From Chrysemys picta bellii (Eukaryota), in contig NC_088802.1 in NCBI RefSeq assembly GCF_011386835.1, positions 9,176,001-9,240,000 of the forward strand: a stretch of 64,000 nucleotides of DNA. The letters are read 5' to 3'. The notes under the pieces are model-generated. The model was given only the letters and a program-made list of their open reading frames with translations, did no database searches and was not told the DNA's origin. The translations under genes and the position numbers were made by a program. This document shows, in pieces, positions 5,186-58,531 of this stretch; the stretch's first letter is position 1, and the number at the start of each line of letters is the position of its first letter.

Positions 5186-6340
5186 TCAGTGCAGATCAGA
5201 GAAGACACTCGAGCCCTTCGTCTGAGCCTCGATCTCTTCTCTCGGAAGCACCAGGTCCTTCGTGAGGTCCCTCTGCTCCTCCTCCGAGCTGACCGGCCGG
5301 TACCCAAAGACCTCCATGGCCGGCTTGCAGATCTCCTGCACTTTCTGCACCTGGTGGAAGCTAAGCTGGTGCCCCCAGGCCTGTGAGACCTTGCTGGCAT
5401 CCCTCCGCACTGCGAGGACCTCGGGGTCCTGAGGCCCAGACCAGTGGGTGATGTTGTGCACCCAGGCCTCGAGCCAGGGGGAGGAGGCCAAGCCGGTATA
5501 GTGGTACCACTCGGCCACCTGACCCACTGGATCCCGGACCAGGTCTTTGTAGCGTGTCAGGAGGTAGCGTCCACGCAGGGCAGGAGGTGGGTGGCGCAAG
5601 GCGGCCAGGTACATGCCGGCTTGGCTGTGGCAGACTTTGCGCATGACCAGGCGGGCGTTGGGCGTGGCATTGTGGGCCCGACTGATAAGCAGGTCTTCCA
5701 GGTAGAGCGAGATATGCTGGCGGGAGGCATAGACGGCCCGGGGGTCCCGCACCAGGTGGATGATGCGGAGGTCGAGGGCCGGGTCGGCCAAGAGCGGGTA
5801 AAGTGCCTCCAGCTGGAAGAACCTGACGACCTTCAGCGCCACATGGCTGTAGGTGATGCAGGCCTCTGCCGCCTTCCCGAAGGGGCTGGGGTCGCAGTAG
5901 GCCTGGCACTCCACCGGCCTCACAATGTCCCCGCGCTGGAAGGCCTCGCAGGCGGGCGGAGAGCAGAGGGCCCGACTCATGGGCCACATGAAGATCTGGG
6001 ATGCCCAGTGGGGCTGATGCCCAAAGTCCTGCAGCGCGGCCATCTCACACCGGAAGAGGGTGTGGAGCAGGTTCCGAGCGGGCCCCTGCAGCAGCTCCGG
6101 GCTGCCTCCGGGCAGGTGGTACCAGACATGCTTGGCTGGCTCCATCAGGTAGAAGACGTCGGGGTGCTGGCTGAAGAGTTGGCCGGCAAAGGTGGAGCCC
6201 GAGCGCCAGCTGGAGAGGAGGAGTATGTGGGTCCTGCCGGGAGGAGGTGGCACGGCGCCGTGCCAGCAGCCCAGCCAGAGGAGCAGGAGCGTGGACGAGA
6301 GCAGGAGCAGCAGGCGCTGGGTGGTGACTCTGGTGAACAT
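5186..6340 (-). CDS. Carbohydrate (GlcNAc-6-O) sulfotransferase, CHST4/5/6-like, 384 aa, single coding exon
   Basis: MFTRVTTQRLLLLLSSTLLLLWLG (type II TM anchor); 5'-PSB motif SSWRSGSTF; FYLMEP; 3'-PB motif IIHLVRDPRAV..SR; C-terminal GYRPVSSEEEQRDL..DLVLPR as in CHST6. ATG at 6340 follows a splice acceptor (..ttctgtctgcggtAG, exon start about 6359). The ORF track's 89-aa upstream extension is intronic/CR1 sequence. Confidence 0.93.
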   Translation of the reverse strand: MFTRVTTQRLLLLLSSTLLLLWLGCWHGAVPPPPGRTHILLLSSWRSGSTFAGQLFSQHPDVFYLMEPAKHVWYHLPGGSPELLQGPARNLLHTLFRCEMAALQDFGHQPHWASQIFMWPMSRALCSPPACEAFQRGDIVRPVECQAYCDPSPFGKAAEACITYSHVALKVVRFFQLEALYPLLADPALDLRIIHLVRDPRAVYASRQHISLYLEDLLISRAHNATPNARLVMRKVCHSQAGMYLAALRHPPPALRGRYLLTRYKDLVRDPVGQVAEWYHYTGLASSPWLEAWVHNITHWSGPQDPEVLAVRRDASKVSQAWGHQLSFHQVQKVQEICKPAMEVFGYRPVSSEEEQRDLTKDLVLPREEIEAQTKGSSVFSDLH

Positions 6341-6502
6341 CCTGCCCTGGTGGCGGAACCTACCGCAGACAGAACGAGGCTTAGTAGGGGCACATCCCCT
6401 CATCCCTCTCCTCCCCCAGAAGCCTCTTGGGCAGAGCCCTGTGTTGTCATGTAATGGACACCACCTTGGCCGATGAACAGGGGACTGACTGGGGAACCTC
6501 CG

Positions 6503-6640
6503 TACATAAGAACGGCCATACTGAGTCAAACCAAAGGTCCATCTAGCCTGGTGTCCTGTCTTCTGACAGTGGCCAGTGCCAGGTGCCCCAGAGGGAATGA
6601 ACAGCACGGGCGCCCATCAAGTGATCCATCCCCTGCCGCC
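6503..6640 (-). mobile_element. CR1 3' end fragment
   Basis: acataagaacggccatactgagtcaaaccaaaggtccatctagcc is the reverse complement of the turtle CR1 3' tail (..ttcttatgt). Confidence 0.8.
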
Positions 6641-10540: not shown

Positions 10541-10695
10541 CATAGAACTCTAAGAGACCCTGAAAGGTCATTGAGTCCAGCCCCCTACCTTCATTAGCAG
10601 GACCAAGTACTGATTTTGCCCTAGATTCTTAAATGGCCCCCTCAAGGACCGAACTCACAACCCTGGGTTTAGGAGGCCAATGCTCAAACCACTGA
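10541..10695 (-). mobile_element. Second tortoise-type SINE, 5' truncated
   Basis: aaatggccccctcaaggaccgaactcacaaccctgggtttaggaggccaatgctcaaaccactga, homologous to 9555-9735. Confidence 0.8.
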
Positions 10696-25959: not shown

Positions 25960-26153
25960 GCTGGGCCCACTTAGACATTCAGTGCCAAAGCTTAGACCTG
26001 CCTCATATCCCAGGGCCTCACTGGAGTGGGGGCTCAGCGCAGAGGAGCAGGGACTCCAGACTCTGCCCTGGCATCAGAGCACCTGAGCTGCCCGGAGCTG
26101 CCCGGGCAGGAGGGATCTGGGGAGAACCGAGGTAGAGGTGAGTGAAGGTGAGT
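25960..26153 (+). other. Putative 5' exon of OR 29784, ending at a GTGAGT donor
   Basis: Homologous to 36820-36994 and 54830-55003; ends ..TGA GTG AAG|gtgagt (donor at 26148). 5' boundary unknown. Confidence 0.5.
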
Positions 26154-29783: not shown

Positions 29784-30740
29784 ATGGGTTACAGCGAAGT
29801 GGCCTGGGAAGAGGGAAACCAAAGCTCCTTGGGGGAATTCATCCTGCTAGGGGTGTCTGACCGGCCGCAATTGGAGCTGCTGCTTTTTGTGCTCATCTTA
29901 ATCTTCTATGTCATGACACTGCTGGGAAACACCACCATCATCGTGGTCTCATGGCTGGACCCCTGTCTCCACACGCCCATGTATTTCTTCCTCAGCAACC
30001 TCTCTTTCCTGGACCTTTGCTTCACTACCAGTCTTGGCCCCCAGATGCTGGTGAACTTCTGCAGCGCCCGCAAGTCCATCCCTTGGGCCGGCTGCATGGC
30101 CCAGCTCTACATCTCCCTCTCGCTGGGCTCCACCGAGTGCCTCCTGCTGGCCATCATGGCCTACGACCGCTACGTCGCCGTCTGCCAGCCGCTGCGCTAC
30201 ACGGCCATCATGAGCCGCCGCCTCTGCCTGCAGATGATGGTTACCGCCTGGCTGAGCGGCTTCGGCAACGGACTGGTGAAGATAGTGCTGATTCTGCGGC
30301 TGCCCTGGTGTGGGAGGAATCAGATCAACCACTTCTTCTGCGAGGTGCCGGCCCTGCTCAAGCTGGCCTGCACCGACACCTCCACCAACATGGCCGAGCT
30401 CCTCGCCAGCGCTGTGTTTTTATTGCTGCTGCCGCTGGGCCTCATCCTGGTTTCCTACGGCTACATCGGCACCGCCGTGCTGAGGATGCGTTCAGCCGAG
30501 GGCAGGCGCAAGGCCTTCAACACCTGCACCTCCCACCTGGCCGTGGTGTCGCTTTTGTACGGCACGGCCATCTACATGTACCTGCTGCCCTCGTCCCAGG
30601 ACCAGGGCAAGTTCGTCTCACTCTTCTACACCATGGTGACCCCCATGCTCAACCCCTTGATCTACACACTGAGGAACAAGGAGGTGCACGGGGCCCTGCG
30701 GAGAGTGCTGGGGAGGAACCCGACCTCTCAGGGGACCTGA
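29784..30740 (+). CDS. Olfactory receptor, class II, family-2-like, 318 aa, intact
   Basis: NQS glycosylation site; [13 protein letters not shown]; [15 protein letters not shown]; HFFCE; [10 protein letters not shown]; [18 protein letters not shown] directly follows an acceptor (ttattttccAG|ATG); another in-frame ATG at 29766. Confidence 0.95.
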
Positions 30741-35250: not shown

Positions 35251-36982
35251 CCCAGCCCCTGGGCTCTAGCTCCTCAGGGGGCGGTTGGCACAAGGCAGCT
35301 CACAGATCTTCCTCTGTTGCAGGAGGTGCTGGGTCTCTCTGCACGGAGCTGCCATGGAACTGATTGAGGTGACACAGTGGAGAGTCCAGGCTCACCAGCT
35401 AAGGGCGGGGACAGAAAGGAGAGAGGCTTGATTGAAATCACAGAAATGACCCATCAGGGTAATTGTCCTGCCCTCTGCCTATGCCAGACAGATCACTGGC
35501 CAGCGAGTCCAGTTACCCCATGTCTCCCTGCCCCAGATCATTGGCCAGCTAGTAAGGGCTTGGGCTGGGGTCACAACGCCAGTGATGGGTCTGAAGGCTG
35601 GGAAATGAGACCTGGGGTTTAGGGGAGCCCTCGGGACAGATGGGGCTGTGACTAGAGCGGGGGTTGTGGCCCCAATCCTGGTGCATTGCTCAGGGGCTGG
35701 GGTCACTCCTCCCCAGGCCACTCTCCCCTAGATGGCGTTGCTGGAGGAGTCTCCTGGCCAATTGGGTGCACGGGGTCCCTGGGGCATCGCAAACCACACC
35801 AGCCAAGTCCCAGCCCCCAGGAGGCTTCAGGGAGTCACATCTCCCGCCCCCTTCCTGGTTCCAACGTCCATAAGAGCCCTGCCTGCACCCTCCCCTTCAC
35901 CCACGGCCCCATGCACGCAGGGACAGATATCATGAGCTGCACAAGCAGGAGCCTCCCACAATCACAGAGACACAGGGCCCTTCTCAGCTGTGCTTCGGAG
36001 CTGGGGCAGCTCAGGCGTTATGTGACACCAGGGCTGGGATAAGTCAAGGAGCAGGGACACAGCCTGGGGATCCTACCTCCTTCCAGCCATCCACTGTACT
36101 TCTCCAGATCTATCCAGCTCTCTGGGTCTCTCCCCAACTCGCTATCCTTCTGCTCGTCCGTCTCTCTTTCTCTCCGTCTCTATCCTTCTATCCATCTACC
36201 TCTCCACCCTCCAGCCTTCTATCCATCCACCTCTCTGCAGATCTCCCTGCTCTTCTATCTGTCTCTTTATTGCTCCTTTTATCCATCCTTCTCTCTGCCT
36301 TTCTTTCTGTCCTAACAATTCACCTCTCTCATCCCCCTGACTCCCATCTATCCTCTCCTCTCTCAGACTGCCCCTCTCTTTTCACATCTGTGCACGTCTG
36401 GCATCCATCAGTCCATCCACACTCTCTCTCCATTCCTCTCCCTCTATCCATCTCTCTCCTCCCCATCTCTGGAATTTCTTTCATTGCATCACTGTGTTCT
36501 CTGGGCTTCTAGGAGACCCTGTCAGCTGAGAGAGGCTCAGGGTATCCCTCCTAGCCTGAGGCAACCTGCCCGCAGGAACTTCACTCACACAGTGACCAGG
36601 CTTGTTTCCTGGGAGGCAGAGGGGGTACCCTGTGACCATGCAACACTGGCTCTGAGCATCCAGTTTGCCACATTCCCTTCCTTTTGAGACCCACCCCAGA
36701 GCCCCAGCAGTGGGTGGGGGGGGGCAAAACCTGCAGCCTCTGGGCTTCCAGAGCTAGATGCGGACGGTGCTGATCCACGGCAGGGGGCGAACTTAGCTGG
36801 TCTCCCTGACCCCGGAGCATCCTTAGACATTCAGCTCCACAGCTCGGGGCTGCCTCGTCCCAGGCACTGGGGGCTCAGTGCAGGGGAGCAGAGACTCCAG
36901 ACTCTGCCCTCGCATCGGAGCATCTGAGCCGCCCGGAGCTGCCCGGACAGGAGGAACCTGGGGAGAGCAGAGCCGGAGGTGA

Positions 36983-36988
36983 ATGGAG
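36983..36988 (+). CDS. Predicted first coding mini-exon segment (ATG GAG) of OR 38949
   Basis: TGA ATG GAG|GTGAGT; a phase-0 join to 38949 gives MEEERGNGSSQWEF. Confidence 0.65.
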
Positions 36989-37387
36989 GTGAGTCTGGGC
37001 TTTTTTCCATCGCTCGTTCCTGCTTATTACTGGGGAGGGGCCAGGAGCTGGGGAGCATGTGGGCTGGTTAGATTTCTTAGCTCTGTGCGATGGGTCTGAT
37101 AAGACTTCCCTGCCTGTCAGGGGTGATGTGAGGAGAAACCCACTAGAGATTGTTAGGTGCTGAGATACTGTTTATATTGTAGTCCCTGTCAGTCGCAGAG
37201 AGAAGTACATAAACATAATAGATTCATGTTAAAGTGGCAGTAGAATCCTAGACATGTAGGGCTTGAGGGTACCTCCAGAGGTCATCTGCGCCATACCCCC
37301 ACACTGAGGCAGGAATAAGTTTACCTAGACCATACTTGACCAGTGTTTGTCCAACCTGTTCTTAAAACCCTCCCTGGACGGCATGGC

Positions 37388-38390
37388 ATTCCGGGGTGCA
37401 GTTCAGACTAATGAGGGGTTGGGTCACCCCTGCCCTGCTACCTTGGCTGCCTCACAATGTTTTGTTGTTGTAGCTTCCAACCTGGATTGCTCACAAGCAG
37501 CCTGACAGCATGCAGGTCACACCCTGCGTGTCTGTGTATAGCCACAGCTCTGGTCCAGCAACTCTGACCCCAGCAGCCTGTCTGCAAACACCAGCCACAC
37601 TCTGGCTTCCTGCAGCCTTGGTTACCACTTGCAGGGTTACAGCAACAAACTCCCAGTTCCAAATTCCCCCCCAAGACTTGGGTTTTGCACTGCCGGCCGC
37701 TTCCTGGACAGCTCAGATATTGTAGGTCCGTTGCCTCTCTAAGGAGATCAATATCCAACAGTTTGCTACTTTAAATGGAGTTACCCCCACAATTAAGTTT
37801 AAATGCAGTTTGGATTATGGACTAAAACATGTTTGTTTAACTACGAAGAGACAGGTTTCATGTGAGTACAAGTATAAGACATTCAAGTCAGAAATGGTTA
37901 CAGGAGAAGTAAAGGGAAAACACTTCCTAGTACTAAAATTAACAAACTAGACTTGGCTCCAGGTGAAATCCCTTCCACATATTCCCAGTAACATTGCTGA
38001 GCCAATTCTTAGACCAGGATCTGCTCCCAAAGTCCAAACGTTGTTTCTTTTGTCTTCTTAGGGGAAAGAGCGAGAGATGGATAGGGAGAGATCCCTTGGG
38101 GTTTTTCTCCCCCTCACTTTTATAGTCCAGTCACCCTTTGATATGCATTTTCTTGAGGGTTTTGCCTAGCTAAAGTTCATTCCTGCTGCAAGGGAGGAGA
38201 CAAAGAGTCTAATGGTGAAGGAGATGCCACGCTGTTGTTTGCTTCAATGCAGATCGGGTTGTCCCTGCCCCGCTTCCTTGCCAAAGACTGGCCACTTGAT
38301 AAGTCATTGCCCATCGCCTTTAATGATACCTGGCTAGACTCCTTTGTGTTTAAGAAACTGATTTACCCAGACTTGTCTTGTAAACATATT
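37388..38390. mobile_element. LTR-like element in the predicted OR intron (paralog at about 55975-56975)
   Basis: ggggtgcagttcagactaatgaggggttgggtcacccctgccctgc.. resembles turtle Gypsy-type LTRs; flanked by CR1 pieces. Confidence 0.5.
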
Positions 38391-38948
38391 TCCGACCTAA
38401 TGGACATGGAGAACAATTGATCACCATCCTCTTCACAACAAATTTTCACATATTTGAAGACTGTTACTAGGTCCCCCTTGAACCTTCTTTCCTCTAGACT
38501 AAACATGCCCAGTTTTTTCACTCATAAGAGGGGCAATTTGGGATCATAGTTAGAAGCCCCAGTCGCGACCAGGATCTGTACAAATACAGAATAAAAGCAA
38601 TGAAACAAAACAGCCTCCATCCCAAAGACCTTATAATCTAAGCATCCATTTATCTATCACATCCTATTGCTCCCACCAACTGCCACAGATCCAGTTTTCT
38701 AGGACACTTTAATTTCCTGTTATATGGATCCTCCTTTGTCACTAACTGCCACAGAACCACTTTTCTGCGACAAAGCCATTCCTGGCAGAAGGATCCTACC
38801 TGCCACCCAACTGTCCCAGATTTTCGATGACAAAGTCACAAGCGGGCGTGGTTCATTCTGAGCAAATGGGGCTGCCCCTGAATGTGTCTGCCTGGTGTAT
38901 GGCTGTTGGGGCTCCTTTCATCCTTATCTTTGTCCCTTCTCCCTGCAG

Positions 38949-39893
38949 GAGGAAAGAGGGAACGGGAGCTCTCAGTGGGAATTCATCCTATTGGGGGTCT
39001 CTGACCAACCACGCCTGGAGATGCTGCTTTTCGTGGTGTTCCTGGTCTTGTACGTCCTGAACCTGGTGGGGAACCTGGCCATCATTGTGGTCTTGTGGCT
39101 GGAACCCTGTCTCCACACCCCTATGTATTTCTTCCTCAGCAACCTCTCTTTCCTGGACCTTTGCTACACCACCAGCACCGTTCCTCAGATGCTGGTGAAC
39201 TTCCGCAGCACCCACAAGTCCATCACCTGGGCTGGCTGCGTGGCCCAGCTCTACATCTTCCTCTCGCTGGGCTGCACCGAGTGCCTCCTGCTGGCCGTCA
39301 TGGCCTACGACCGCTACGTCGCCATCTGCCAGCCACTGCACTACACAATTGTCATGAGCCGCCGCCTCTGTCTGCAAATGGCGGTCACCGTCTGGTTGAG
39401 TGGCTTCAGCAACTCCATGCTGCAGACCGTCCTGACCGTGCGGCTGCCCCGGTGTGGGCGGAACCGGGTCAACCACTTCTTCTGCGAGGTGCCGACCCTG
39501 CTCAAACTGGCCTGTGTTGACACCTCCACTATCGAGGCTGAGCTTTTTGCTGTCAGTGCGATCTTCCTGCTGGTGCCGCTGGGCCTCATCCTGGTCTCCT
39601 ATGGCTACATTGTCGCCGCCGTGCTGAGGATTCGCTCAGCCCAGGGCAGGCTCAAGGCCTTCAACACCTGCGCCTCCCACCTGGCCGTGGTGTCGCTCTT
39701 CTATGGCACGGCCATTTTCATGTATCTACAGCCTCCATCCAGCTACTCCCAGGACCGGGGCAAGATGGTCTCCCTCTTCTATGGCATCATCGCCCCCATG
39801 CTGAACTCACTGATCTACACGCTGAGGAACAAGGATGTGCACGGGGCCCTAAGGAGGGTGCTGGGGAGGCTATTCGGGAGTAAGAGGACATGA
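38949..39893 (+). CDS. Olfactory receptor, class II, family-2-like; main coding exon (316 aa when spliced), intact
   Basis: All OR motifs present (LHTPMY, MAYDRY, HFFCE, KAFNTCASHL, PMLNSLIY). Begins right after the acceptor ..tttgtcccttctccctgcAG. The ORF-track start at 38895 is GTG, not ATG. Confidence 0.93.
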   Translation, partial: EERGNGSSQWEFILLGVSDQPRLEMLLFVVFLVLYVLNLVGNLAIIVVLWLEPCLHTPMYFFLSNLSFLDLCYTTSTVPQMLVNFRSTHKSITWAGCVAQLYIFLSLGCTECLLLAVMAYDRYVAICQPLHYTIVMSRRLCLQMAVTVWLSGFSNSMLQTVLTVRLPRCGRNRVNHFFCEVPTLLKLACVDTSTIEAELFAVSAIFLLVPLGLILVSYGYIVAAVLRIRSAQGRLKAFNTCASHLAVVSLFYGTAIFMYLQPPSSYSQDRGKMVSLFYGIIAPMLNSLIYTLRNKDVHGALRRVLGRLFGSKRT

Positions 39894-43113: not shown

Positions 43114-43558
43114 AGCGCCTCAAGTCCATCGCTTGGGCCGGCTGCGTGGCCCAGCTCTACATCTCCCTCTCGCTGGGCTCCACCGAGTGCCTCCTGCTGG
43201 CTGTCATGTCCTACGACCGCTACGCCGCCATCTGCCAGCCACTGCGCTACACGGCCATCATGAGCCGCCGCCTCTGTCTGCAGATGATGGTTACCGCCTG
43301 GCTGAGCGGCTCTGGCAACGCACTGGTGAAGACGGTGCTGACTCTGCGGCTGCCCCGGTGTGGGAGGAATCGAATCAACCACTTCTTCTGCGAGGTGCCG
43401 GCCCTGCTCAAGCTGGCCTGCGCCGACACCTCCACCAACATGGCCGAGCTCCTCGCCAGCGGTGTGTTTTTACTGCTGCTGCCATTGGGCCTCATCCTGG
43501 TCTCCTACAGCTACATCGGTGCCGCTGTGCTGAGGATGCGTTCGGTCGAGGGCAGGCT
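43114..43558 (+). pseudogene. Olfactory receptor fragment (TM3-TM5), paralog of OR 29784
   Basis: [25 protein letters not shown]...ILVSYSYIGAAVLRMRSVEGR; TM1-2 and TM6-7 missing, repeat-derived sequence on both sides. Confidence 0.92.
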
Positions 43559-43706
43559 GCTGGAGGGTCCCATTGGAAAATGAAAGGGTTTGAGGGGGAA
43601 GGGCAGGCTCAGAGTCAGTCTGCCCTGGCAGTGGATAGGGGGGCACTAGGACCCTGCGGCAGCAGTTGTTGCAGGGAAGCAGAATGGAGGAGACAAAGAC
43701 AGACAG

Positions 43707-45725: not shown

Positions 45726-47084
45726 CCACCCCCTGGGCCCTAGCTCCTCAGTGGGCGGTCGGCACCAGGCAGCTCCCAGACCTTCCTCTCAGGGCCGGCT
45801 CTAGGTTTTTTGCCGCCCCAAGCAAAAAAAAAAATGTGGCTGCCCCCCACCCCAGCCCTGGGCTCTTCCCCCCCCACCAGTGCCCTCCCCCACCCGCACC
45901 CCCTGCTGCCCCAGCCCTCAGCTTCCCCCCGCAAACATGACCTCCTTATTCACCACAGCAAACCCCATTTACACTTGCAGTGGGGATCAAACCATTTCTC
46001 CTATTTTTATTTCACTTTAGTATAAATCTCGCCCCCACAACCCCATCTTTATTGCTCCAAATGCACATGGAAGGCATAGGGACTAACCCTCCAACCTTGT
46101 ACCCAGAAAGGGATGGGGAGCTAGTAAAGAGGGTTCAGGCAGAGGAGCGGGTGTGGGGGTGCTTGGGGGCTCTACACTGGCAGAGAGGCGGGGTGTGATG
46201 TACTCGCGGAGGAGTGTGGAGGAGGAGAGGGGGTATCAGGAGGGTTGTGGGAGAAGAGGTGCAGGGGAAGGGGGAGGTGCGGGAGGAGAGGGCTGGGGGA
46301 GAGTACAAGGGGAGAGGTGCGGGTGAAGGGAGAGGACAAGGGGAAGGGGTGCGGTGAAGGAGCGATGGGGCGAGGTACAAGTGGAGGGGCTGCGAGCAGG
46401 ATGGGGGGTGCAAGGGCTGAGAGGGGCAGACGCTGACAACTGCTTCCCCAGCCCCGTGCAGGCAGAGCCGAGAGGACAGACACTGACCCCCAGGTGCCCG
46501 AGCTGCGGGGGTCCCCCCGGCACGCTCCGGCTCTCCAGCGGCCGGGCAGCCTGAACTGCCGTCCAGCCTGTGCGACTCTGGCTGCCATGAGCGCCATCTA
46601 GCGACTGCAGCCAGAACTGCAGTGTCAGTTCCAGCGCAGCCTGAAAGCCTCAGCTGACAGGAAGAACAGGAGTACTTGTGGCACCTTAGGCCTGGTCTAC
46701 ACTAGGCGTTTATGTCGAAGTTAGCGCCGTTAAATCGAATTAACCCTGCACCCGTCCACACTGCGATGCTATTTAGTTCGACATAGAGGTCTCTTTAATT
46801 CGACTTCTGTACTCCTCCCCGACGAGGGGAGTAGCGCTAAATTCGACATGGCCATGTCGAATTAGGCTAGGTGTGGATGGAAATCGACGCTAATAGCTCC
46901 GGGAGCTATCCCACAGTGCACCACTCTGTTGACGCTCTGGACAGCAGTGCGAGCTCGGATGCTCTGACCAGCCACACAGGAAAAGCCCCGGGAAAATTTG
47001 AATTTGAATTCCTTTTCCTGTCTGGCCAGTTTGAATCTCATTTCCTGTCTGGACATCGTGGCGAGCACAGCAGCACTGGCAACG

Positions 47085-47661
47085 ATGCAGAGCTCTCCAG
47101 CAGTGATGGCCATGCAGTCTGTGAATAGAAAGAGAGCCCCAGCATGGACTGATCGTGAAGTCTTGGATCTCATCGCTGTGTGGGGCGATGAGTCCGTGCT
47201 TTCCGAGCTGCGATCCAAAAGAAGGAATGCAAAGATCTACGAGAAGATCTCTAAAGACATGGCAGAGAGAGGATACAGCCGGGATGCAACGCAGTGCCGC
47301 GTGAAAATCAAGGAGCTGAGACAAGGCTACCAGAAGACCAAAGAGGCAAACGGACGCTCCGGATCCCATCCCCAGACATCCCGTTTCTACGAGGCACTGC
47401 ATTCCATCCTCGGTGCTGCCGCCACCACTACCCCACCAGTGACCGTGGACTCTGAGGATGGGATACTGTCCACGGCCGGTTCCTCAGACATGTTAGGGGA
47501 CGGGGAAGATGAGGAAGGAGATGAGGAGGGCGAGGCAGTTGGCAGCTCTCACAACGCTGATTTCCCCGACAGCCAGGATCTCTTCATCACCCTTACAGAG
47601 ATCCCCTACGAAGCGTCCCCAGCCATTACCCCGGACACAGAATCTGGTGAAGGATCAGCCA
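47085..47661 (+). CDS. Harbinger Myb/SANT-like DNA-binding protein, exon 1
   Basis: MQSS..RKRAPAWTDREVLDLIAVWG..IYEKIS..M.ERGY.RD..QCRVKIKELR; ends at donor A|GTAAGT (phase 1). Confidence 0.9.
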
Positions 47662-48655
47662 GTAAGTGTTGTAAACATCTAAACATTTATTTTTAACAAA
47701 ACAGGAATATTAACAATTAAAAGAATGGGTTGTTCATGATTAGTGTGCCCTAGGCGCTTAACGGTTTAGTAAGGGGCAGTGCAAGTTTTGAAAAGAAATC
47801 TAGCAATGTCCGGTTTTCAGTGATTGTCCTGCACAAGCCGCTCTACTGTGTATTCCCTGCTACTGCAGCTACAGTAAAATGCGGTCTATATGTGCGGGGA
47901 TAGAGCAGTAATCCTCCTGGGACATCTCGATGAAGCTCTCCTGGAGGTAACTTGAAAGCCGTTGCATGAGGTTCTTGGGGAGAGCGGCCTTATTGGGTCC
48001 TCCGAAGTACGACACGTTGCCGCGCCACGAGATTATCAGGTACTCGGGGATCATTGCTCTGCACAGCAGGGCGGCATACGGCCCTGGTCTTTGGAGGCTT
48101 TCCCGGAGCATTCTCTCTTTGTCGCTCTCGGAGATCCTCATCAGGGTGATGTCGGCCATGGTGACCTGCTTTTAATTAGGTAGGGGAATGTTAGTGTTGG
48201 GACTGCTTTCCCGTTCCTTTACAGAACTGTCACCGCTGGTTTGCAGCCACGCGGTGGAGGCGGGAGAGGGGCAGCCGAAAGGGATCGTTCCCGGGGACAG
48301 CCGCGAGGGGGTGGGACAGGGGCAGAGTTCCCGCTTGCCGGATTGCTGGCAGCAGGGACTGACATTGATTTAAATGTGAAATGAGGCCAGTGGTAATATA
48401 AAAGTTTTAAACTGCCACAAGTGTACGGCTTACCATGTCTGCCTGCAACAGAAATTCCGTTGTGCTGCCTCGCTTCTCAAATGTGCTGTTCAAGACCCCA
48501 GGCACAGAATGCGAAGGCCGAGAATTCGACCTTGTGCTGAGTGCGCATGTGAAAGGTGCTGTGCATGGTCTTGTTCACAGAGAAAGACTATGTTCTTTGT
48601 TCACAACTACATTTATCTTTCAGAGGAATTCACTCCCTTTTTCCCATTTCCACAG

Positions 48656-49880: not shown

Positions 49881-51164
49881 TCACAGGTTACCCTGCTCAC
49901 TCAGGAACTTTGCTTTCAAAGCCTCCCGGATGCACAGCGCTTCCCGCTGGTCTCTTCTAATCGCCCGGCTGTCTGGCTGTGAGTAATCACCAGCAAGGCT
50001 ATTTTCCTCAACCTCCCACCCCGCCATAAAGGTCTCCCCCTTGCTCTCACAGAGATTGTGGAGCACACAGCAAGCTGCTATAACAATGGGGATATTGGTT
50101 TCGCTGAGATCACAGCGAGTCAGTAAGCTTCTCCATCTCCCCTTGAGACGGCCAAAAGCACACTCCACCACCATTCTGCACTTGCTCAGCCGGTAGTTGA
50201 AGAGTTCTTTTTCAGTGTCCAGGGCGCCAGTATAGGGCTTCATGAGCCAGGGCATTAGCGGGTAGGCTGGGTCCCCGAGGATGACTATAGGCATCTCCAC
50301 ATCCCCAACAGTTATTTTGTGGTCCGGGAAGTAAATACCTTGTTGCAGCCGTCTAAACAGACCAGAGTTCCTGAAAACACGAGCGTCATGAACCTTGCCC
50401 GGCCATCCCACGTAGATGTTGGTAAAACGTCCCCTGTGGTCCACCAGTGCTTGCAGCACCATGGAAAAGTATCCCTTTCGGTTAATGTACTGGGTGGCCT
50501 GGTGGTCCGGTGCCAGGATAGGGATGTGAGTTCCATCTATGGCCCCACCGCAGTTTGGGAATCCCATCGCTGCGAAGCCATCTATGATCGCCTCCACGTT
50601 TCCCAGGGTCACTACCTTTGGCAGCAGTACATCAACGATTGCCTTCGCTACTTGCATCACAACAACCCCCACGGTAGATTTGCCCACCCCAAACTGGTTC
50701 GCGACTGACCGGTAGCTGTCTGGCGTTGCAAGCTTCCACAGGGCTATGGCCACTCGCTTCTGTACACTCAGTGCAGCTCGCAACCGGGTGTCACTGCGCT
50801 TCAGGGCAGGGGACAGCAACTCACAAAGTTCCAGGAAAGTTCCCTTCCGCATGCGAAAGTTTCGCAGCCACTGGGATTCATCCCAGACCTGCAGCACTAT
50901 GCGGTCCCACCACTCAGTGCTTGTTTCCCGTGCCCAGAATCGCCGTTCCACGGCATCAACATGACCCATTGCCACTGTGATGTCCTCGGCGCTGGGTCGC
51001 CTGCTTTCTGACAGGTCTGTGCTACTCTCAGACTTCAGGACATCACCGCGGTGCCGTAGCCTCCTTGCCTGACTTTTCTGCATCTGCCTCAGGGAAACCT
51101 TTATGATAAGCTGCGAGACGTTGAGAGCGGCCACAACTGCAGCGATGGTCGCAGCGGGCTCCAT
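49881..51164 (-). CDS. Harbinger DDE transposase (HARBI1-family), 427 aa, uninterrupted
   Basis: GAIDGTHI, ILGDPAYPL and RMVVECAFGRLKGRW catalytic motifs; YINRKGYFS; N-terminal FRMRK.TF.ELC; minus-strand AATAAA at 49760-49765. Confidence 0.96.
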   Translation of the reverse strand: MEPAATIAAVVAALNVSQLIIKVSLRQMQKSQARRLRHRGDVLKSESSTDLSESRRPSAEDITVAMGHVDAVERRFWARETSTEWWDRIVLQVWDESQWLRNFRMRKGTFLELCELLSPALKRSDTRLRAALSVQKRVAIALWKLATPDSYRSVANQFGVGKSTVGVVVMQVAKAIVDVLLPKVVTLGNVEAIIDGFAAMGFPNCGGAIDGTHIPILAPDHQATQYINRKGYFSMVLQALVDHRGRFTNIYVGWPGKVHDARVFRNSGLFRRLQQGIYFPDHKITVGDVEMPIVILGDPAYPLMPWLMKPYTGALDTEKELFNYRLSKCRMVVECAFGRLKGRWRSLLTRCDLSETNIPIVIAACCVLHNLCESKGETFMAGWEVEENSLAGDYSQPDSRAIRRDQREALCIREALKAKFLSEQGNL

Positions 51165-54100: not shown

Positions 54101-54991
54101 TGGGGATCCTACCTCCTTCCAGCCATCCACTGTACTTCTCCAGATCTATCCAGCTCTCTGGGTCTCTCCCCAACTCACTGTCCTTCTGCTCATCTCTTTC
54201 TCTCCTTCTCTATCCTTCTATCCATCTACCTCTCCACCCTCCAGCCTTCTATCCATCCATCTCTCTGCAGATCTCTCTGCTCTTCTATCCATCTCTTTAT
54301 TACTCCTTTTATCCATCCTTCTCTGTCTTTCTTTCTGTCCTAACAATTCACCTCTGTCTCCCTCTCTCTCTCATCCATCCACTCCTCTCTCGGACTCTCC
54401 CTCTCTTTTCGCATCTGTGCACATCTGGCATCCATCAGTCCATCCACACTCTCTCTCCATTCCTCTCCCTCTATCCATCTCTCTGTCTCCTCCCCATCTC
54501 TGGGATTTCTTTCGATCTATCACTGTGGTCTCTGGGCTTCTAGGAGACCCTGCCAGCTGAGAGACACTCCCTCCCAGCCTGGGACAACCTGCCTCCAGGA
54601 ACTTCACTCACACACCAAGCGGGCTTGGTTCCTGGGATGGGGGTGTTACCCTGTGATCATGCAACACTGGCTCTGAGCGTCCAGTTTGCCACATTCTCTT
54701 CCTTTTGAGACCCACCCCAGGGCCCCAGCAGTGTGTGTGTGGGGTGCAACACTTGCAGCCTCTGGGCTTCCAGAGCCAGCTGTGGATGGCAGGGGGCAAA
54801 CTTAGCTGGTCTCCCTGACCCCAGAGCATCCTTAGACATTCAGCTCCACAGCTCGGGGCTGCCTCGTCCCAGGGACTGGGGGCTCAGTGCAGGGGAGCAG
54901 GGACTCCAGACTCTGCCCTGGCATCGGAGCATCTGAGCCGCCCGGAGCTGCTCGGGCAGGAGGAACCTGGGGAGAGCAGAGCCGGAGGTGA

Positions 54992-54997
54992 ATGGAG
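54992..54997 (+). CDS. Predicted first coding mini-exon segment (ATG GAG) of OR 57587
   Basis: TGA ATG GAG|GTGAGT, identical to 36980-36994; phase-0 join to 57587. Confidence 0.65.
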
Positions 54998-57586
54998 GTG
55001 AGTCTGGGCTTTTTCCACCACTCGTTCCTGCTTATTACTGGGGAGGGTCCAGGAGCTGGGGAGCATGTGGGCTGGTTAGATTTCTTAGCTCTGTCCGATG
55101 GGTCTGATAAAACTTCCCTGCCTCCCAGGGGTGATGTGAGGAGAAACCCACTAGAGATTGTTAGGTGCTGAGATACTGTGCTGCTGGGGGGCAGACAAGT
55201 GCCATCGATTGGTAGATTTGGTTAGGGTTGGAATCTGTCTTATCCAGGGTCCCCTAGCCCACAAACATGCAGGGAGAACTTTGCACAGGTGAGTAGTTAA
55301 TCACCTGGGCGAGGGTCTGCAGGATGGTGTTTGTAAAGTGCCGTGTAAACCTGTTGTCCCATGAGGGGCCCTGATCCTGCAAAGATCTACGCACGTGCTT
55401 AACATAAGCCCACGGGCAACCCCACTGTAAGTGGTTTGGGTAAAGGAGATTAGGGCCGGTAGGAAGCATGGGCCACATTTACAAAGGGATTTAGGTGCCC
55501 GCAAGTACAGATGGGTGCTAGGTGCCTAACTCCTATTGGGACCAAAGGAGTTAGAAAATCTTTTGCAAAATCCCACTTGTTGCCTATCTGCATATTTAGC
55601 CCTATATGAGTCCATAATCCCCCTGAATAGCAGTGGGTTTGGGTGCATCATTCCTTAAAGTTGCTTTGGAAGCCCCCGCTCTTACTGCTCGTAGGATCAG
55701 GGTCTACCTTATCATTAGTGGTACTGAGATTATTTTATTCTCGCCCTGAGTGTTTAGATCATGGTCCCTGTCAGTCGCAGAGAGAAGTACATAAACATAG
55801 GAAATTCACGTTAAAGTGGCAGTAGAATCCTAGACAAGTAGGGCTTGAGGGTACCTCCAGAGGTCATCTGCGCCATACCCCCACACTGAGGCAGGAATAA
55901 GATTACCTAGACCATACTTGACCAGTATTTGTCCAACCTCTTCTTAAAACCCTCCCTGGACGGCATGGCATTTCGGGCTGCAATCCAGACTAATGAGGGG
56001 TTGGGTCACCCCTGCCCTGCTACCTTGGCTGCCTCACAATCTTTTGTTGTTGTAGCTTCCAACCTGGGTCGCTCACAAGCAGCCTGCCAGGATGCAGGTC
56101 ACACCCTGAGTGTCTGTGTATAGCCACAGCCCTGGTCCAGCAACTCTGACCCCAGCCGCCTATCTGCAAACACCAGCCACACTGTGGCTTCCTGCAGCCT
56201 TGGTTACCACTTGTAGGGTGACTACAAGAAATTCCCAGGTCCAAATTCCCGCCGAAGACTTGGGTTCTGCACTGCCCGGCCCCTTCCTGGACAGCTCAGA
56301 TATTGTAGGTCCGTTGCCTCTCTAAGGAGATCGATATCCAACAGTTTGCTACTTTAAATGGAGTTACCCCCACGATTCAGTTTAACTGCAGTTTGGATTA
56401 TGGAATAAAACATGTTTAACTATGAAGAGACAGGTTTCAAGTGAGTAAAAGTATAAGACATTCAAGTCAGAAATGGTTACAGGAGAAGTAAAGGGAAAAC
56501 ACTTCCTAGTACTAAAATTAACAAACTAGATTTGGCTCAAGGTGAATTCCCTTTCACATTTTCCCAGTAACATTGCTGAGCCAATTCTCAGAACAAGATC
56601 TGCTCCCAAAGTCCAAACGCTGTTTCTTTTGTCTTCTTAGGGGAAAGAGAGCGAGAGATGGATAGGGAGAGTTCTCTTGGGGTTTTTCTCCCCCTCACTT
56701 TTATAGTCCAGTCACCCTTTGATATGCATTTTCTTGAGGGTTCTGCCTAGCTAAAGTTCATTCCTGCTGCAAGGGCGGAGACAAGGAGTCTAATGGTGAA
56801 GGAGATGCCATGCTGTTGTTTGCTTCAATGCAGATCGGGTTGTTCCTGCCCCACTTCCTTGCCAAAGACTGGCCACTTGATAAGTGATTGCCCATCGCCT
56901 TTGATGATACTTGGCCAGACTCCTTTGTGTTTAAGAAACTGATTTACCCAGACTTGTGTTGTAAACTTATTTCCGACCTAATGGACATGTAGAACAGTTG
57001 ATCACCATCCTCTTTACAAACTCTTTACACCAATTGATCACCATCCTCTTTACGACAAATTTTCACATAGTTGAAGACGGTTACCAGGTTCCCCTTCAGC
57101 CTTCTCTCCTCTAGACTAAACATGCCCAGTTCTTTCACCCATAAGAGGGGCAGAGGACAGTTAGCGCTGCAAATTTGGGATCATAGTTAGGAGCCCCAGT
57201 TGCGACCAGGATCTGTACAAATACAGAATAAAATCAATGAAACAAAACAGCCTCTGTCCCAAAGACCTTATAATCTAAGCATCCATTTATCTATCACATC
57301 CTATTGCTCCCACCAACTGCCACAGATCCAGTTTTCTAGGACACTTTAATTCCCTGATGTATGGATCCTCCTTTGTCACTAAGTGCCACAGAACCACTTT
57401 TCTGTGACAAAGCATTTCCCTGGCAGAAGGATCCTACCTGCCACCCAACTGGGTCAGATTTTCGATGACAAAGTCACAAGCGGGCGTGGTTCATTCAGAG
57501 CAAATGGGGCTGCCCTTGAATGTGTCTCCCTGGTGTATGGCTGTTGGGGCTCCTTTCATCCTTATCTTTGTCCCTTCTCGCTGCAG

Positions 57587-58531
57587 GAGGAAAGAGGGAA
57601 CGGGAGCTCTCAGTGGGAGTTCATCCTATTGGGGGTCTCTGACCAACCACGCCTGGAGATGCTGCTTTTCGTGGTGTTCCTGGTCTTGTACGTCCTGAAC
57701 CTGGTGGGGAACCTGGCCATCATTGTGGTATTGTGGCTGGAACCCTGTCTCCACACCCCTATGTATTTCTTCCTCAGCAACCTCTCTTTCCTGGACCTTT
57801 GCTACACCACCAGCATCGTTCCTCAGATGCTGGTGAACTTCCGCAGCACCCACAAGTCCATCACCTGGGCCGGCTGCGTGGCCCAGCTCTACGTCTTCCT
57901 CTCGCTGGGCTGCACCGAGTGCCTCCTCCTGGTCGTCATGGCCTACGACCGCTATGTCGCCATCTGCCAGCCGCTGCGCTACACAATCGTCATGAGCCGC
58001 CGCCTCTGCCTGCAGATGGCGGCCACTGTCTGGTTGAGCGGCTTCAGCAACTCCATGCTGCAGACCATCCTGACCGTGCGGCTGCCCCGGTGTGGGCGGA
58101 ACCGGGTCAACCACTTCTTCTGTGAGGTACCGGCCCTGCTCAAACTGGCCTGTGTTGACACTTCCGCTAACGAGGCCGAGGCTTTTGCTGTCAGTGTGAT
58201 CTTCCTGCTGGTGCCGCTGGGCCTCATCCTAGTCTCCTACAGCTACATCGTCGCCGCCGTGCTTAGGATTCGCTCGGCCCAGGGCAGGCTCAAGGCCTTC
58301 AACACCTGCGCCTCCCACCTGGCCGTGGTGTCGCTCTTCTACGGCACGGGCATTTTCATGTATCTACAACCTCCGTCCAGCTTTTCCCAGGACCGGGGCA
58401 AGATGGTCTCCCTCTTCTATGGCATCATCGCCCCCATGCTGAACTCACTGATCTACACGTTAAGGAACAAGGATGTGCACGGGGCCCTAAGGAAGGTGCT
58501 GGGGAGGCTATTCGGGAGTAAAAGGACATGA
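57587..58531 (+). CDS. Olfactory receptor, class II, family-2-like; main coding exon, paralog of 38949, intact
   Basis: Same motifs and length (945 nt); acceptor ..tttgtcccttctcgctgcAG. The ORF-track start at 57383 is GTG, with no in-frame ATG before TM1. Confidence 0.93.
   Translation, partial: EERGNGSSQWEFILLGVSDQPRLEMLLFVVFLVLYVLNLVGNLAIIVVLWLEPCLHTPMYFFLSNLSFLDLCYTTSIVPQMLVNFRSTHKSITWAGCVAQLYVFLSLGCTECLLLVVMAYDRYVAICQPLRYTIVMSRRLCLQMAATVWLSGFSNSMLQTILTVRLPRCGRNRVNHFFCEVPALLKLACVDTSANEAEAFAVSVIFLLVPLGLILVSYSYIVAAVLRIRSAQGRLKAFNTCASHLAVVSLFYGTGIFMYLQPPSSFSQDRGKMVSLFYGIIAPMLNSLIYTLRNKDVHGALRKVLGRLFGSKRT

Follow-up and report, generated by a model that had tools for sequence, protein, structure and literature searches.

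Where does translation of an olfactory receptor (OR) begin when the exon that encodes nearly all of the protein offers no ATG in its first 24 codons? We examined this question for two OR genes, B1 and B2, in a stretch of 64,000 nucleotides (hereafter the window, to whose positions plain coordinates refer) of the painted turtle Chrysemys picta bellii (assembly GCF_011386835.1, contig NC_088802.1, positions 9,176,001 to 9,240,000, forward strand), which contains 0 N bases. The original prediction held that both genes receive their initiator methionine from an exon 2.0-2.6 kb upstream, and our analysis favours the same reading, namely that the start codons of B1 and B2 lie in a two-codon exon at that distance, with a probability of roughly 0.8. 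They are most likely intact, selected OR2B/OR2G-like genes, as judged from their sequence, with the coding region split by one phase-0 intron. The parts of the two genes are as follows, with a caret marking the splice junction here and below.

36880-36988, plus strand: putative 5' exon of B1; 3' end defined; block common to turtles and alligator
36989-38948, plus strand: putative coding-region intron of B1; 1960 nt, phase 0, donor GAG^GTGAGT
38949-39893, plus strand: exon 2 of B1; 314 codons and stop; OR family-2-like seven-transmembrane receptor starting EERGNGSS
54889-54997, plus strand: putative 5' exon of B2; 3' end defined; ends TGA-ATG-GAG (54992-54997)
54998-57586, plus strand: putative coding-region intron of B2; 2589 nt, phase 0
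57587-58531, plus strand: exon 2 of B2; 314 codons and stop; protein 95% identical to B1

The proposed upstream start exon and its splice signals

We found that exon 2 of both genes starts cag^GAGGAAAGAGGGAAC (at 38949 and 57587) directly behind the pyrimidine tract ttatctttgtcccttctc(c/g)ctgcag, as had been claimed, and that both translations open with EERGNGSSQWEF and continue for 314 codons to the stop. The first in-frame ATG of B1 is indeed the one at 39021, which is codon 25 and lies 6 residues ahead of the start of the Pfam 7tm_4 match, and in B2 there is no exon-2 ATG ahead of 57659. An in-frame stop (38859-38861) stands 5' of the B1 acceptor. Upstream of both copies we recovered TGA-ATG-GAG^GTGAGT at 36983 (B1) and 54992 (B2), with the TGA in frame directly 5' of the ATG, and a 25-mer around this sequence occurs exactly twice in the window versus 0 occurrences expected. 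In B1, the last 6 nt of exon 1, ATGGAG (36983-36988), are the start codon followed by Glu, and the leader before them is free of ATG, the closest upstream one being at -225. Joining ATGGAG to exon 2 in phase 0 gives 2 + 314 = 316 amino acids in both copies, and the predicted protein length and intron lengths (1960 and 2589 nt) were all reproduced. A full-length OR open reading frame (ORF) is obtained only by joining both exons, and the junction falls after codon 2, ahead of both Asn7 and the 7tm_4 match. The difference in intron length corresponds to a deletion of approximately 570-630 nt in B1 (37170, versus 55180-55750 in B2), the missing segment being kept in B2 and in Malaclemys, Gopherus, Emydura and Carettochelys.

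Upon comparing the splice signals with chance, we considered as candidate start exons every ATG up to 10 kb upstream from which a phase-0 GT can be reached in at most 40 codons with no intervening stop, and we scored donors with a position weight matrix (PWM) built from general knowledge, so that all scores are approximate. There are 182 such candidates for B1 and 197 for B2, and the donor of the ATG-GAG^GTGAGT exon leads both sets by about 3 bits on this approximate matrix. Among all GT sites in the 10 kb upstream, its GTGAGT ranks first of 490 in B1 and second of 537 in B2. The acceptor AG is the first one to follow a branch-point-like ccttAtc and an unbroken pyrimidine run; in B1 this candidate branch point lies approximately 23 nt before the acceptor, and no AG intervenes between it and ...ccctgcag^. 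Within 400 nt upstream of exon 1 we found no TCCCNNGGGA or TAATTA site (the O/E (EBF) and homeodomain motifs) that was convincingly conserved, and an apparent promoter motif upstream of exon 1, TCCCAGGGA, was rejected since its spacing is wrong; no promoter claim is made.

From these signals we infer the transcription start, the use of the junction in vivo and translation from the exon-1 AUG. Transcription would begin upstream of a short leader exon that carries no ATG ahead of AUG-GAG and ends with it, which makes this AUG the leader's first. The strong donor GAG^GUGAGU would then be joined to the first AG past a conserved branch point and pyrimidine tract (ccuuAuc...cccugCAG^), so that the 1960-nt (B1) or 2589-nt (B2) intron is removed, and the resulting message would encode M-E-EERGNGSS..., a 316-amino-acid receptor with an N-glycosylation site at Asn7.

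Selection on exon 2 and conservation of the junction

We compared the two genes with turtle loci from Malaclemys (two genes), Gopherus flavomarginatus, Carettochelys, the pleurodire Emydura, Emys orbicularis and Eretmochelys, and with two paralogues of Alligator mississippiensis, all loci being fetched via the annotated proteins of the closest homologues. The 7tm_4 matches of B1 and B2 have E = 1.9e-51 and 7.9e-52 and cover profile positions 1-277 of 280, and the best named relatives are OR2B/OR2G-like. Among the hallmark motifs, the N-terminal NxS/T, PMYFFL, MAYDRY and KAFxTC are present in the B-type genes. NPxIY is near-universal in the seventh transmembrane segment (TM7), whereas all turtle B-type genes have NSLIY in its place (Pro7.50 to Ser; 39786-39800 and 58424-58438 in the window, and loci L002-L005); the alligator genes and the A type, a neighbouring OR described below, have NPLIY. 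The purifying selection described next argues that function is kept despite this replacement.

B1 and B2 differ by 15 amino acids, with 27 synonymous and 16 non-synonymous differences, close to the earlier hand counts of about 15 and about 25 synonymous changes; the ratio of non-synonymous to synonymous substitution rates (dN/dS) is 0.18 (Fisher p = 8e-8), and the purifying selection claimed from those counts is borne out by a value that is not near 1. Across all B-type pairs dN/dS is 0.15-0.45, and in 9 genes the 314 codons are free of indels, frameshifts and stops, as expected of functional ORs. The turtle suborders diverged more than 200 million years ago, and the split between turtles and crocodilians is older. 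The coding-type evolution of exon 2 includes its first 24 codons, ahead of the internal Met, for which the corresponding ratio of proportions (pN/pS) is 0.08-0.27 between turtles and alligator. These codons are under purifying selection and must be translated, so that the start has to lie 5' of exon 2.

This result bears on the reading that the start codon has simply been lost, with either a 290-amino-acid product from the codon-25 Met or pseudogenes too young for their ORFs to have decayed. Such a loss would agree with the lack of an in-exon ATG ahead of 39021 or 57659 and with the 290-amino-acid products that NCBI lists for B2 and several orthologues, and the weak Kozak position -3 of the exon-1 start could permit leaky scanning to the codon-25 Met. 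We nevertheless consider it very unlikely, given that the 24 codons before this Met show no indels and the constraint just described, that the NxS/T sequon is present in 9 of 9 genes, and that the dN/dS values of the whole exon hold across anciently diverged lineages. A real pseudogene looks different: the hawksbill (Eretmochelys imbricata) orthologue (L009:5579-6523) keeps ATGGAG^GTGAGT and the acceptor, and two in-frame stops in its exon 2 (FF*E, LF*G) make it a pseudogene. A similar model, of 180 amino acids, is present in Lepidochelys.

A start at a non-AUG codon (GTG or CTG), in an unspliced exon 2 that reaches 5' of the CAG, would fit a mechanical ORF list that begins the B-type ORFs at GTG. 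It would also fit the finding that approximately 140 nt ahead of the acceptor (window 38807-38948; L006:14904-15039) can be aligned even between turtles and alligator. However, the stretch just 5' of the CAG shows 1-nt indels between species, of which the 314 codons 3' of the acceptor have none, and in-frame stops at varying positions. The 140-nt region is therefore not coding, given its frame-breaking indels; directly before the CAG it consists of pyrimidines, and the AG at which this tract stops is the first to follow a branch-point-like motif. Initiation at non-AUG codons is rare besides, and we regard this as the least credible of the readings weighed here. The length of the conserved stretch exceeds what a branch point and pyrimidine tract need, and a splicing or promoter element within it is possible.

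Upstream of every compared gene we found a homologue of the exon-1 region. ATGGAG^GT, whose conservation in other turtles the original prediction had left to be looked at, is invariant in all B-type loci compared and in an alligator paralogue. In the longer form AATGGAG^GTGAGT it is unchanged at 10 loci, these being the two of Chrysemys, the two of Malaclemys, and those of Emys, Gopherus, Eretmochelys, Carettochelys, Emydura and the alligator gene P0057; an eleventh locus, the other alligator paralogue, has a GC-donor variant, and the cag^ acceptor was confirmed in all 11. Within 300 nt on either side, AATGGAGGTGAGT is the longest invariant run among five turtle species of both suborders (13 nt, next-best 8), and it remains the longest when alligator is added (13, next-best 5). 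The acceptor block TTTGTC..TTCT...CAG^ is kept in turtles and both alligator paralogues. No conserved in-exon ATG ahead of the first transmembrane segment (TM1) was found in the 9 genes; in-exon ATGs far upstream are lineage-specific, being confined to Gopherus and one Malaclemys copy. In the leader, 9 of 11 sequences have their closest upstream ATG more than 130 nt away. The conserved exon end and acceptor, together with the selected N-terminal 24 codons, thus favour the two-exon, phase-0 model that had been proposed.

Several observations weigh against this model. The turtle introns align throughout at 65-90%, with the exon-1 region not above that background, and we rejected general conservation as evidence for exon 1; because the whole intron aligns within turtles, only the 13-nt block and the comparison with alligator carry weight. 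Kozak position -3 is a T in most turtles, which is weak, and upstream ATGs occur out of frame in Gopherus flavomarginatus, 4 nt before the start codon (L003:5300-5309), and in frame in Carettochelys, at -57. One alligator paralogue has the GC donor, ATGGAG^GCGAGT, and its exon is found twice in the locus (L007:4417-4428 and 19340-19351). An assembled-run (Logan) protein with the ME N-terminus was not found among the cluster members or with an N-terminus-restricted query of the 316-amino-acid Emys protein, and these Logan and protein-collection searches gave genome-derived models only. The Gnomon models of other species, discussed below, may be driven by homology rather than supported by RNA, and an additional exon between leader and exon 2 is conceivable.

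The last two points touch on a reading in which the leader is used with another or an alternative first exon, such that the N-terminus is not ME or the exon-1 AUG opens a short upstream ORF. Several 5' exons subject to alternative splicing are common in OR genes, as are upstream ATGs (PMC7055050), and Gnomon chose other first exons: MSPKSQ^GTAAGT, whose donor is good, for Carettochelys and MWTQ^GTATGT for one of the alligator paralogues. These alternatives are species-specific, though. Every B-type locus retains ATG-GAG together with its phase and that of the acceptor, a combination one would not expect of an AUG lying out of frame in the mature mRNA, and the models of Emys, hawksbill and alligator moreover join leader and exon 2 directly. 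We consider an alternative first exon unlikely.

Database models of the two genes and their orthologues

Both NCBI models in this genome look wrong in the light of the signals described above. The B2 model (P0147) is a protein of 290 amino acids from the codon-25 Met, and the B1 model, XP_005312387.2, uses a different upstream exon.

35640-35647, plus strand: NCBI alternative 8-nt first coding exon, ATGGGGCT^GTGACT, in XP_005312387.2 (P0003, 'MGL...')

In that model the ATGGGGCT exon is joined to an AG that lies 9 nt into exon 2 (gaaag^A, from 38958), giving a protein of 314 amino acids that begins MGLGNGSS. The reading that it is correct has a RefSeq accession in its favour, and the sequence of the mini-exon can also be found 5' of B2 and in Malaclemys. 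In addition, 'MGL' N-termini recur in models of several species, with RefSeq and Ensembl together providing them in at least 8 reptile species (P0003, P0005, P0006, P0122, P0127, P0129, P0130, P0133, P0136, P0150 and P0154; L002:10001). On the other side, the donor GCT^GTGACT lacks G-1 and G+5 and scores about 1.4 bits versus 11.3 (hand calculation with the approximate PWM), its GT is GG in Gopherus, and no homologue of the mini-exon was found in Emydura, Carettochelys or alligator. Its acceptor stands behind three earlier AGs, off the pyrimidine tract, and the model drops the conserved EER codons. Where checked, the mini-exons under the 'MGL' models of different species are non-homologous, lying 3.3 kb upstream in Chrysemys and before an 83-nt intron in Malaclemys, which suggests that this start was propagated between annotations by protein homology. 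We judge the 8-nt exon to be an annotation artefact and the MGL protein highly improbable; the concern that a different upstream exon might be used, raised with the original prediction, is thus real as far as the NCBI B1 model (35640) goes, but the exon concerned is non-conserved and has weak signals.

Other public models agree with the two-codon start exon. Emys orbicularis XP_065271952.1 is a protein of 316 amino acids beginning MEEERGNGSS, with ATGGAG^GTGAGT and an intron of 2024 nt; the Eretmochelys model CAM5158791.1, whose locus was checked, joins the same exon and acceptor directly; and Alligator mississippiensis XP_059570076.1 reads ME^NERGNGSS across a 5.0-kb intron. All three checked models share ATGGAG^GTGAGT, an intron of 2.0-5.0 kb and the acceptor cag^(G/A)A(G/T)GAAAGA, yielding ME followed by EER or NER. 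The models of Gopherus evgoodei (XP_030399426.1, MEEKRG) and Pangshura tecta (KAM9119102.1, MEEERG), both of 316 amino acids, and a Lepidochelys (Kemp's ridley) model with a matching ME N-terminus were compared at the N-terminus only. Novelty for turtles, as first supposed, stands in one respect and falls in another: no description of such genes in a turtle or other reptile was found in the literature searched, nor any publication discussing orthologue models with the ME^EER split, but the same split is already present in public Emys, sea-turtle and alligator models.

If the two-exon model is right, it corrects two painted-turtle reference models, one with an unsupported mini-exon and one shortened to 290 amino acids, and it would mean that an 'MGL' start has been carried over several reptile genomes on non-homologous exons. 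Surveys based on single-exon ORFs would count the B-type clade as truncated or pseudogenic, which calls for caution with counts of reptile OR repertoires. The effect on receptor biology would be small because the exon adds only Met-Glu.

Known split receptors and a likely history of the start codon

Two-exon ORs are known in human and mouse, as the original prediction stated: Barnes et al. 2020 describe 13 human and 41 mouse split ORs (PMC7055050). Their first class comprises loci once called pseudogenes, in which an adjacent upstream exon supplies the missing initiator ATG, and the introns, 550-22628 bp in mouse, are mostly N-terminal and conserved across mammals (PMC7055050). On sequence-based criteria, B1 and B2 belong with these genes. 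As in the mammalian split ORs, the turtle OR exon has no start, the ATG lies in the preceding exon and the intron falls in the extracellular N-terminus; the turtle intron lengths of 2.0-2.6 kb are inside the mouse range, and orthologues retain both start and junction, the criterion applied by Barnes et al. (PMC7055050). The differences are that the clade is reptilian (turtles and crocodilians), that exon 1 contributes no more than two codons, and that the mammalian genes have RNA-seq and single-cell expression support (PMC7055050) whereas the turtle genes are judged by sequence comparison. The nearest mammalian relatives, OR2B2-like with 67-70% identity, have their ATG just before the NxS, as in single-coding-exon ORs. 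Cichlid ORs reported to have more than one coding exon are a further documented exception to the rule of intronless ORs (PMC4122780), and they concern a different vertebrate class and different OR groups. Our results would add turtles and crocodilians to a split-OR class published for mammals, and the start exon involved is apparently very old. Relative to the orthologue models of Emys, Eretmochelys and Alligator, the architecture is identical, those models being predictions in other genomes.

Compared with ordinary vertebrate ORs, which have one or more non-coding 5' exons and one coding exon, the B type has the same exon-intron layout and differs in that the start codon is on the leader side of the intron. 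The contrast is provided within the window by the A-type neighbour.

26039-26147, plus strand: 5' exon of the A type, homologous to the B leader; donor AAG^GTGAGT, with GTG-AAG replacing ATG-GAG
29784-30740, plus strand: A-type OR coding exon; own ATG right after the acceptor ttccag^ATGGGT; single-coding-exon contrast

The homologous exon of the A type thus reads GTG-AAG^GTGAGT, with the donor (at 26147) kept and the ATG absent, and is presumably a non-coding leader to the ATG at 29784. The Pelodiscus A-type locus shares this non-coding arrangement, having the homologous exon without an ATG and the start codon in the main exon. The alligator A-like paralogue P0119 has ATGGAG^GTGAGT (L012:4287-4298) and, at its best acceptor, acag^GTG-ATG (10680-10685), with both ATGs in frame, and may be an intermediate between the split and unsplit forms. 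The leader exon predates the split between A and B paralogues, and the genes differ in where the start codon lies: B-type genes keep it in this exon, the A-type genes of Chrysemys and Pelodiscus have it in the main exon, and alligator P0119 has one in each, in frame. This distribution suggests that one of two redundant starts was lost reciprocally. We would put at about even odds a history in which the ATG-GAG start exon has been kept since before the turtle-crocodilian divergence and redundant in-frame starts were lost reciprocally among OR2B/2G-like paralogues. In the tree, a turtle B clade spans both suborders (support of 100 in the Shimodaira-Hasegawa-like approximate likelihood ratio test, SH-aLRT). 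The free tree places the alligator ERGNGSS group outside turtle B with support 88; a single clade is compatible with the data (approximately unbiased test, p-AU 0.47), and the B state may or may not have arisen once.

The plus-strand OR array of the window comprises the A-type gene (29784-30740), B1 (38949-39893), an A-like fragment (43122-43559) and B2 (57587-58531). The fragment covers residues 90-235 only and has 94% DNA identity to the A type over 300 nt, which suggests duplication of an A+B pair followed by decay of the second A copy. Between this fragment and B2, an intact ORF of 427 amino acids (49884-51164, minus strand) matches the DDE_Tnp_4 (PIF/Harbinger-type) transposase (E = 3e-37), and an ORF of 232 amino acids (46998-47693, plus strand) contains a Myb/SANT-like DNA-binding domain (E = 1e-21), the NCBI product there being of 350 amino acids; together they resemble either a Harbinger-like element with two ORFs or a domesticated pair. 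At the edge of the array, a GC-rich ORF of 473 amino acids (5189-6607, minus strand) matches Sulfotransfer_1 (E = 1.6e-13) and is probably a single-exon sulfotransferase gene.

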